Below are positions 20,024 through 42,090 of a stretch of DNA of 64,000 nucleotides, piece after piece. The stretch is from Calcarisporiella thermophila CBS 279.70 (taxonomy: Eukaryota; Fungi; Calcarisporiellomycota): contig NW_027192193.1 of NCBI RefSeq assembly GCF_041956535.1, positions 1,107,192-1,171,191 of the forward strand, read 5' to 3'. Position 1 is the stretch's first letter, and every line of letters starts with the position of its first letter. Position numbers and translations under genes: made by a program. The notes under the pieces were generated by a model. That model was not told the DNA's origin and searched no databases. It saw only the letters and a list, made by a program, of their open reading frames with translations.

Positions 20024-20837
20024 CTAGCGAGTCAAGCGCCTCATAAATTCTAACACATTCCCGGTCCACAAAGACTCGCCTTCAGGAGATGGAGCAACCC
20101 CGCTCTCTTTATTTAAGTGTAAAAGTATGGGAGTGATGAAGTGCCGAAGCTCGTTAATCTGGCGTTCCATTTGTTGGTTCTGTTCACGCAGCTGACGCAG
20201 CAGCTCACGTTGTGTCTCCACCTCGCCACGGCCACCTTCCACCTCCTGCTCCAACTCTGCCTTTTGTATTTGCAGATCTTTCTCAAGTGTGTCGAGCCGC
20301 AAGAGTTCTTCCTCTCTTTCTATAATGGACATTTACACGTAAGCATAAGGCGGTAATAGAGTTGAAGAATCGTCATGGATACCTTGGTGATTCCGCTTAA
20401 AATTTTCGTTAAATATTGGGAAATATCGAGACGTGTCTAACTTATGTAATGGTTTGTCTATGTACCCGGCAAAGAATAAGAGTTAACACGGATGTAATGG
20501 GCCTGAACTAGTTGCACCAAGTAACACACTTACCAAAGGTATTGATACTTGAAGACGAAACCTGTTTATTGGAAAAATAAAAAATAAAAGATTTTAAGCT
20601 TGGGCCAAATGCTAACAGTGAATAGAATATTTTCGCACGCCCTACCTCAACCTCATTGCTTGTATCATTTACCTCATCAAGAGCCATCTCTGCATCTCCA
20701 TCTTCATTTTCTTCGCCATCAGATGAGTATGATAATGGAGAGGCAGATCTAGACGATACTGTCGTTTCAGGGACAAAATCAGCATCGCTGTCAGTGTCCG
20801 GCAGATCTTCTTGAAGAAAATTTGATATCTCGTTCAT
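20024..20837 (-). CDS. Hypothetical protein with acidic N-terminus and C-terminal coiled coil (4 coding exons; start uncertain)
   Basis: Exons join in frame via GT-AG introns; E/Q/L heptad-rich C-terminus; family not recognised. Confidence 0.55.
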
Positions 20838-21357
20838 TATTTTAGATAATGCTGTTCGTAATGTTGAGTGAATTGGCTCAACACTGACGTTTTCAAGGCT
20901 ATATGAAAAACAAAAAAGACATTTATTTTTATTTAGACAATTGACATAATGGAAAATAGGGGGCCAATTGGAGAAGTCCAAGGTGAAGCATATTCAAGCC
21001 TTATTCGGAAAATTGAAATCGGCTGCAGATGGAGCTAGAAGAAAGAAAGCTTAGCAATGTTGGTGTTTTCGAGACAACTATGAATGCGGTAGTATGGGTA
21101 ACTGTGGCAATATACATGAGCTCTCAGCCCAAAGGCAAGCTGGCCAAGAGAAGCTGGATGAAAACTTGACACTGCTGTGTAATGGAGGTACTGCCTAATG
21201 CATAAACTAGATCGATATGCAATACAGATTTTGGCTTCCATCCTTAGTAATCGTCTGATGGAATAAGAAAGCTTTGCTCTAAATCCGAGTTTATCATTAA
21301 TATAAAAGATTTGCAGGTGGTTTAGCGGTTTGCTTATTTTATGTATTGGCCGCGGAT

Positions 21358-40899: not shown

Positions 40900-42090
40900 A
40901 TGAGATTAACCGCGGATCTTATCCAGAGATCGCCCAATTACATCAATGCAGTAAAAGATAGAGAGTTGGACTTACGAGGTATCCTTTAATGAATGGTAAT
41001 TTGGATAGTGGTTTTTTTTCTGAAAGCTGAACATTAGATGAGTAGCCTTGCGATGGTTAGGCTATTGATCTGTGATGCAGCTTTTACTTTCAATATTGGA
41101 ATCTGGCAAGTGATCTCTTGAGACACTGCCAGACTTTCAGATGATTTATCATTTTTTTGAAACACCTTAATTCGTTATCCTTGCTACATTACTTTTCTTG
41201 ATTATAGGCAATAAAATCCCCACGATCGAGAATTTGGGTGTTACAAAGGTAAGGCCTTCTGTTCAAGAAACAACTGCCGAAACAAAGGCTTGATGTATAA
41301 TATTTAATCATCAGGATCTCAACGACACCATTGATTTCACCGATAATGATATTCGTCATCTAACTAATTTCCCGCTCCTTCGGCGATTGCGCTGTCTTCT
41401 TCTCTCAAACAACCGCATTTCTCGTTTAGATTCATCAGTTGCACAATTCCTCCCCAATCTCGAAGCGCTCATTCTCACCAATAATACCATCCAGGAACTA
41501 GGAGATTTGGAACCACTTGGAGCATTTAAAAAACTTCAATATGTAAGCTTACTTGATAACCCAGTGACTCGCAAGAAGCATTACCGACACTTTGTGATCT
41601 GGAAATGTCCAAACTTGAGAGTATTGGATTTTCAGCGGGTGCGGGACGCAGTAAGTTGGATATTATGATTCCCATTTCACCCGCCATTTTAGCTCATATC
41701 TCATGTTTAACCAGGAGAGGAAAGAGGCAAGAAAACTATTTCAAGCGAAAGAGGGGATCACATCGCTGGCCCAATCTATCATTGATACAAAAACGAAGAC
41801 CTTTGAGCCCGGAGCTGGATTGGAGGAGATGAAATCCAGTGTGCCCAAATTAGTTGCTAACCCCGAAGAACAAGAAAAAATCAGGGTATTTTCATATTTG
41901 TTTATGTACTGAGCACTTCAAAACGAGATCCAATATTTATATTTATATCTTTCTTTAGGAGGCAATTAAGAATGCAAAATCACTGGATGAGGTTGCTCGA
42001 CTCGAAAACTTACTCAGAACCGGACGACTTCCCGGGGATGGCCCGGCCGCTCAAGGAAACGCAGATATGGAGGTTGAGGAGGATGAGTGA
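40900..42090 (+). CDS. LEA1: U2 snRNP protein A' (LRR protein); 5 exons
   Basis: MRLTADLI...KDRELDLRG|NKIPTIENLG, IDFTDNDI, LLLSNNRI, LLDNPV...YR..VI and LRVLDFQRV; C-terminal AIKNAKSLDEVARLE. Confidence 0.95.
40979..41207 (+). other. Long, structured first intron of U2A' with U12-type donor
   Basis: Donor GTATCCTTT; CCTTAAT at 41165-41171; nested inverted repeats found by eye. Confidence 0.6.

Follow-up and report, generated by a model that had tools for sequence, protein, structure and literature searches.

A U12-type first intron with two tandem hairpins in the U2A' gene of Calcarisporiella thermophila, and its possible compaction

The U2A' gene (SNRPA1/LEA1) of Calcarisporiella thermophila, a thermophilic fungus of the phylum Calcarisporiellomycota and the only species of its genus in NCBI taxonomy, lies on the + strand of a 64-kb stretch of contig NW_027192193.1, hereafter the window, and has four introns. 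A preliminary description of the window had singled out intron 1 as over-long and as folding almost entirely into a multi-branch RNA, which it took for a candidate splicing-control element or a hosted small RNA. Intron 1 is indeed the longest in the gene, with 229 nt compared to 66, 64, and 73 nt for the remaining introns. The gene structure was read against the public 252-aa C. thermophila protein VTP21DRAFT_7366 (P0092), which served as the full-length U2A' model and whose N-terminus confirms the splice of intron 1 exactly; exon 3 was used as the query in the search for homologues. The features of the locus and the orthologous minor introns are listed in Table 1.

Table 1 Features of the U2A' gene of C. 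thermophila (positions in the window) and U12-type introns at the same site in other fungi (positions in their own contigs).
Feature	Source	Position	Strand	Length	Remarks
U2A' exon 1	C. thermophila	40900-40978	+		ATG at 40900; 26 codons + 1 nt; translation is the N-terminus of P0092
U2A' intron 1	C. thermophila	40979-41207	+	229 nt	U12-type GT-AG, phase 1; splice as in P0092
U12-type 5' splice site	C. thermophila	40979-40987	+		GTATCCTTT; fits /RTATCCTT
Basal stem, 5' arm	C. thermophila	40987-41011	+		UAAUG-AA-UGGUAA-UUU-GGAUAGUGG; predicted to pair with 3' arm 41172-41191
Structured core	C. thermophila	41019-41141	+	123 nt	Predicted; closed by 8-bp inner stem, or two extended hairpins
Hairpin 1	C. 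thermophila	41021-41086	+		Predicted; 9-bp lower stem, 5x5 internal loop, 13-bp upper stem, loop UGCGAUGGUU
Hairpin 2	C. thermophila	41098-41138	+		Predicted; no internal loop
Upstream branch-like motif (BPS1)	C. thermophila	41164-41171	+		ACCTTAAT; 36 nt before intron 3' end
Preferred branch site (BPS2)	C. thermophila	41174-41191	+		Putative; GUUAUCCUUGCU[A41186]CAUUA; doubles as 3' arm of the basal stem (41172-41191)
3' splice site AG of intron 1	C. thermophila	41206-41207	+		Exon 2 from 41208
U2A' exon 2	C. thermophila	41208-41248	+		G|GC AAT AAA ATC = G-N-K-I, as in P0092
U2A' intron 2	C. thermophila	41249-41314	+	66 nt	
U2A' exon 3	C. thermophila	41315-41650	+		100% identical to P0092
U12-type orthologous intron	Basidiobolus ranarum	L008:1778-2050		273 nt	
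U12-type orthologous intron	Basidiobolus meristosporus	L044:1580-1849		270 nt	
U12-type orthologous intron	Ambispora gerdemannii	L042:1580-1828		249 nt	
U12-type orthologous intron	Rhizophagus irregularis	L087:680-1051		372 nt	
U12-type orthologous intron	Rhizophlyctis rosea	L088:683-1095		413 nt	Chytrid
U12-type orthologous intron	Metagenome contig L045	L045:495-780	-	286 nt	Rhizophagus-like glomeromycete

Splice signals and age of intron 1

Intron 1 is a U12-type, or minor-spliceosome, intron. This had been overlooked in the preliminary description, and it changes what the flanking stems of the fold touch. The motif of its 5' splice site (5'SS) was by itself not enriched genome-wide, with 60 occurrences compared to 74 in the control; the copy in intron 1 sits at the splice junction confirmed by P0092. 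The genome encodes U11 and U6atac small nuclear RNAs (snRNAs), found at 53.1 and 47.6 bits, respectively, both above the Rfam cut-offs. A U12 candidate scored 44.4 bits, below the cut-off of 53 bits, but has the canonical 5' end UGCCUCAAUCUAAUGAGUAAGGAUAAUAUC. This end is predicted to pair with positions 41174-41191 through 12 bp, a bulged A41186, and a further 5 bp (-18.8 to -19.4 kcal/mol). Because 8% of shuffled introns reached the same duplex energy, the pairing is supportive of the U12-type assignment and not decisive.

To place these signals in their genomic context, we used a pattern blind to the first intron base, which gave 34 loci across the genome and recovered 30 likely U12 introns; ~40 further U12 introns stood above the control count. 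The 30 introns were roughly 75-135 nt long in total. They began with ATATCC in 20 cases and GTATCC in ten, which indicates a bias of the genome's minor introns toward the ATATCC (AT-AC-type) class. The TCCTT of the branch site was preceded by TA in 12 of the 30 and by A in 20. The corresponding segment of the genome's U12 snRNA (L002:1501-1600, - strand; G000:C1:926673-926772) reads GGAUAA, where human U12 has GGAAAA, and judging from the sequences this segment and the branch-site consensus (TATCCTTAAC) apparently co-vary.

No exact TCCTTRAY occurs in intron 1, and two branch-like motifs were considered. BPS2, with TTATCCTTGCTAC (41175-87) as the U12-pairing candidate, carries the species-specific TTATCCTT, and its TTATCCTTG.. 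fits the consensus of the 30 other U12 introns. Its bulged A41186 lies 21 nt from the 3' splice site (3'SS), within the 11-30 nt that separate branch site and 3'SS in nine other U12 introns inspected by eye, whereas BPS1 is farther away than in those nine. BPS1 was placed by MAFFT under the TCCTTAAC of the orthologues and is predicted to be single-stranded (probability of being unpaired, 0.80); its pairing with U12 is weaker than that of BPS2. We prefer BPS2, with A41186 as the putative branch point, over BPS1 (A41169/41170).

The same phase-1 position, after ..DLR-G, carries a U12-type intron with the identical 9-mer GTATCCTTT in six orthologous loci (Table 1), one of which is the only contig retrieved by a metagenome scan with a degenerate exon-1/5'SS pattern. 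At this position the introns of Cunninghamella, Absidia, Bifiguratus, Umbelopsis, Mortierella, and the Logan contig L009 are U2-type. Outside C. thermophila, intron 1 ranged from 76 to 413 nt and was shortest in Bifiguratus. Since the intron is U12-type at an identical site in a chytrid, Basidiobolus, Ambispora, and Rhizophagus, it must be ancient. The distribution points to a minor intron that is no younger than the ancestor shared by these fungal lineages and was later converted to U2-type several times.

Predicted fold of intron 1

All the pairings listed in the preliminary description are present in the sequence, and the 8-bp inner stem (41019-26/41134-41) is exact. On the + strand, the segment 40987-41191 had a minimum free energy (MFE) of -62.5 kcal/mol (z = -5.46), and none of 200 shuffles folded as well, which bears out the earlier expectation of a fold stronger than shuffled sequence. 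The - strand was weaker (z = -3.32), as expected for a structure that exists at the RNA level. The whole 229-nt intron had a z-score of -4.7. When 3190 native 205-nt windows from the 64-kb window were regressed on composition and used as background, the segment ranked second (residual z = -3.5).

The two hairpins were each significant when folded separately, hairpin 1 (segment 41019-41088) at -31.1 kcal/mol (z = -6.1) and hairpin 2 (segment 41098-41141) at -18.2 kcal/mol (z = -4.1), and the core that holds both reached -50.2 kcal/mol (z = -6.25). When folded alone, the terminal parts of the intron, 40 nt at the 5' end and 66 nt at the 3' end, were unstructured. The basal stem proposed to join these ends contains five G-U pairs and has a duplex energy of -11.1 to -11.6 kcal/mol, which was not significant (p = 0.06-0.08): 6% of the 5' arms after shuffling and 8% of 31-mers taken from native sequence did as well. 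In the MFE structure of the full intron, the basal stem adopts another register and the inner stem gives way to extensions of the hairpins, and several predicted folds, the multi-branch form among them, are nearly equal in energy. The modelling thus confirmed a statistically real fold whose robust feature is a pair of tandem hairpins and not a defined multi-branch structure. The motif AUUUUUUUG, formerly likened to an Sm site, is present in the intron, but nothing supports such a role.

Intron compaction and its alternatives

The distance between the 5'SS and the branch site sets intron 1 apart from the other U12 introns of the genome. We counted genome-wide pairs of TATCCTT and TCCTTRAY by the gap between them and compared the counts with those of a reversed-pattern control. 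Pairs clearly exceeded the control at gaps of 30-60 nt (31 matches vs. 13) and 61-91 nt (29 vs. 7); there were 11 vs. 16 at 92-122 nt, and the 16 matches at 160-190 nt were hardly above the ten of the control. The excess was therefore confined to short gaps of 30-91 nt, the range of the other U12 introns, which makes the gap of 178-191 nt in U2A' intron 1 exceptional. Subtracting the 123-nt core leaves 55-68 nt, a normal spacing for the U12 introns of this genome.

We tentatively read the two-hairpin core as a lineage-specific, zipper-like compaction of an ancient U12-type intron and not as a separate RNA gene; on the folding models, it probably accommodates the length of the intron structurally. 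The two stable hairpins would form a self-contained core in the middle of the intron and would remain stable at the growth temperatures of a thermophile. With the core folded out, the di-snRNP (a double small nuclear ribonucleoprotein) of U11 and U12 would meet an intron of normal size. The weaker complementarity of the flanks, in which the segment after the 5'SS may pair with the branch-site region, might delay the binding of U12 or hide cryptic U2-type sites. We infer that compaction matters for the splicing of intron 1. Of the splicing-control element proposed at the outset, a cis-acting structural role is thus plausible and is the version we prefer, and its sensor and hosted-RNA versions found no support.

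The closest precedent is the zipper stem of Saccharomyces cerevisiae, which by definition comprises 6 bp or more, lies between the 5'SS and the branch point, and leaves linkers adding up to 42-85 nt (PMC12350175). With the 8-bp inner stem formed, the linkers in U2A' intron 1 are 31 nt and 29-45 nt, or 60-76 nt in total, so that this stem qualifies in silico, whereas the full-intron MFE uses the extended hairpins instead. The linker window known from long S. cerevisiae introns such as RPS17B/RP51B covers the value found here (PMC12350175), and zipper stems in yeast likewise occur at the level of species and are not conserved in sequence. There are also differences. Yeast zipper introns are recognized by U1 plus U2, and the present one is U12-type and would be recognized by the U11/U12 di-snRNP. 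In place of a single long stem there is a predicted two-hairpin core, and, unlike a classical zipper stem, the flanking stem extends over the branch site itself.

Several results weigh against compaction as a needed function. None of the six U12-type orthologous introns (249-413 nt, four fungal lineages) was significantly structured (z = -0.4 to -2.1), so that long versions are spliced in other fungi without such a fold. Branch sites were mostly unpaired (0.71-0.86) in the four orthologues tested, among them both Basidiobolus species and Ambispora. No k-mer was shared beyond chance among the U12 orthologues, whose alignment recovered the splice signals only, and a covariance model of the core matched nothing in nine orthologous loci. 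The preliminary description had named a lack of conservation in orthologous introns as grounds for abandoning its proposal, and this lack is largely what we found in a comparison whose nearest relative had ~70% protein identity. Among the introns compared, the fold appears to be lineage-specific and restricted to C. thermophila. The predicted graph distance between the 5'SS and the branch site was 12.7, compared to 25 ± 9 in shuffled sequences, only 1.4 standard deviations lower and not significant, as the predicted ends of any RNA this long come close to each other. The folding energy per nt, -0.28 kcal/mol for U2A' intron 1 compared to -0.09 ± 0.05 for the 30 other U12 introns, speaks in favour of compaction, but this measure is partly confounded by length. 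Finally, no 205-nt stretch of the window is more structured against the native background than 20681-20885 on the + strand (MFE -66.2 kcal/mol, shuffle z = -4.4; no Rfam match), indicating that folds of this strength are not rare in this genome.

These points are the strength of a neutral explanation, in which local inverted duplication or drift gave rise to the hairpins in a long first intron under weak constraint, where they persist only because they do not hinder splicing. We regard it as nearly as likely as compaction. It accommodates the absence of fold and sequence from both the six U12-type orthologues and the U2-type versions, the comparable z-scores elsewhere in the window, the non-significance of the basal stem and of the 5'SS-branch distance measure, and the single occurrence of the core in the genome. 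It explains less readily why two independent stable hairpins stand side by side with a core z of about -6, why the + strand folds better than the - strand, and why the intron is a length outlier among the U12 introns of the genome with a fold that exactly offsets the excess. It also leaves aside that potential cryptic splice sites are buried in the stems, a CAG (41078-80) in that of hairpin 1 and a GT (41110-11) in that of hairpin 2. An unlikely third explanation places the function in the flanks. The segment after the 5'SS would mimic the 5' end of U12 (UAAUGAGUAAGGAUAAU), pair with the branch site, and compete with the U12 snRNP, so that splicing would depend on minor-spliceosome activity or temperature; the 5' arm resembles the 5' end of U12 because it pairs with the branch site. 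The 3' arm coincides with the 17-bp U12 target, and BPS2 has a predicted probability of being unpaired of 0.37; for the 30 other U12 introns the mean is 0.68 and the minimum 0.36. The duplex of the 5' arm and the branch site (-11.1 kcal/mol) is more stable than in all of those 30 (mean -3.8, minimum -10.8), and warming from 37 to 50 °C reduces the predicted stability of the stem from -11.6 to -7.0 kcal/mol. Retention of the intron would extend the frame as GGT ATC CTT TAA, giving a stop after three codons. Against such a mask stand the non-significance of the stem relative to shuffled or native partners, the competition between its two registers, the much greater stability of the U12 duplex, and the fact that 8% of shuffled introns reach the energy of that duplex. 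An accessible branch-like motif lies 8 nt upstream, and the orthologues leave their branch sites open.

The remaining two explanations ascribe to the intron an RNA or a binding site of its own, and as either of these the element is a weak candidate, being a singleton without conservation. That it hosts a small RNA released after splicing, such as an orphan small nucleolar RNA (snoRNA)-like species, a Dicer substrate, or a stable intronic RNA, would suit an intron three times longer than its neighbours with two stable hairpins followed by a U-run. With intron-hosted H/ACA and C/D snoRNAs it shares its place in an over-long intron of a housekeeping gene, and its tandem hairpins are superficially H/ACA-like. 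However, boxes in register, a pocket in hairpin 2, and an Rfam match are all absent here. Rfam gave no match to the element even at E <= 10, neither to a known snoRNA nor to any other family, and none at the gathering score across the window; no tRNA or tRNA-like fold was found in the element. For an H/ACA snoRNA, the hinge UUUUACUUUCAAUAUUGGAA lacks ANANNA, and the nearest ACA (41162-64) comes 23 nt past hairpin 2, which lacks a guide pocket. For a C/D snoRNA, the CUGA motifs (41020, 41027) come before the UGAUG-like ones (41072, 41139), after which there is no further CUGA, an order that precludes a C...D terminal motif. Orthologous introns contained no match, and Rfam found nothing above threshold inside the introns of the orthologous loci. 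A DNA search and the covariance model recovered only the core itself from the genome, so the element is single-copy and not a miniature inverted-repeat transposable element (MITE), and it has no paralogue. We therefore consider a hosted RNA, one of the two original proposals, improbable. Least probable of all, by analogy, is an autoregulatory sensor in which hairpin 1 would mimic stem-loop IV of U2, bind the U2B''-U2A' dimer, and control splicing of its own pre-mRNA, much as U1A acts through its polyadenylation inhibition element (PIE). The suggestion came from the UUGCG in the loop of hairpin 1, which is near the (A)UUGCA core of U1 and U2 loops. This loop (UUGCGAUGGUU) contains neither of the heptamers bound by U1A/U2B'' (AUUGCAC/AUUGCAG) nor the loop of the species' own U2 stem-loop IV (UAUCGCACUACCU); it agrees with the latter in only ~3-4 contiguous bases with no matching 3' half and is thus a poor mimic, and the orthologous introns contain no conserved loop of this kind.

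Known regulated introns offer further comparisons. In the slow or regulated U12 'switch' introns and in U11-48K and 65K, which autoregulate through the U11 snRNP-binding splicing enhancer (USSE), a minor intron likewise lies in a gene of the splicing machinery and its retention leads to a premature stop. The USSE consists of tandem U12-type 5'SS motifs a few nt apart and is conserved from plants to animals. In U2A' intron 1, TATCCTT also occurs twice, at the 5'SS and at the branch site, but the copies are 196 nt apart, for which reason a USSE was rejected, and the second copy fits the branch-site consensus of the species. Splice signals are masked by autoregulatory structures in yeast RPL30 and RPS14B and by a thermosensor lying between APE2's branch point and its 3'SS. 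There, as possibly here, a local helix over a splice signal could make splicing conditional. Those elements are conserved or bind proteins, whereas the masking stem in U2A' intron 1 is statistically marginal and absent from the orthologues.

Implications for minor introns and additional observations

If the hairpins do compact intron 1, they would represent a zipper-type structure in a U12-type intron and would extend a principle known from U2-type introns of yeast to the minor spliceosome, in which one di-snRNP binds the 5'SS and the branch site together. A firmer by-product of the analysis is the distribution of the intron itself, which is minor from chytrids to Glomeromycotina and in Calcarisporiella and U2-type in Mucorales, Umbelopsis, Mortierella, and Bifiguratus. 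This pattern of retention and conversion offers a clean case for studying the change from U12-type to U2-type. U2A' is a U2-specific protein that U11/U12 lack (PMC3584512), so that cross-talk between the spliceosomes is conceivable. We think it rather improbable that a built-in decoy of the U12 5' end and the two hairpins together make U2A' production depend on minor-spliceosome activity or temperature; if they did, the two spliceosomes of a thermophilic fungus would be linked through an RNA structure.

Some observations concern intron 1 and its orthologues more generally. A U2-type-looking donor, GGTAAT, is located at 40995-41000, 17 nt into the intron, and its use would include an in-frame TAA. 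In hairpin 1, a kink-turn (K-turn) in the CUGA/GUGAUG internal loop was rejected, as both sides of this loop are equally long (symmetric, 5x5) and adopting the K-turn register would break up the lower stem. A and B boxes of RNA polymerase III (Pol III) in the same hairpin were also dismissed, since they would be only 12 nt apart. The UGAUGA found in three U12-type orthologues was not significant and has no D box after it. Between the two Basidiobolus species, intron 1 looks roughly 80-85% identical over its first ~70 nt and its last ~50 nt when compared by eye, and intron 2 is barely alignable, which hints that the ends of intron 1 are under constraint beyond the splice motifs.

Three U2 snRNA genes were located in the C. 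thermophila sequences (L046:1501-1697 on the - strand, L047, and G000:C16:551888-552083). All three have the same stem-loop IV loop, with AUCGCAC instead of the usual AUUGCAC/G. The intron on metagenome contig L045 gave a sub-threshold SNORD107-like match (28 bits; cut-off 50). At 2006-2118 on the + strand of the same contig, the plant MIR7504 precursor model scores 75 bits (gathering score 83); the matching stretch is probably an inverted repeat.

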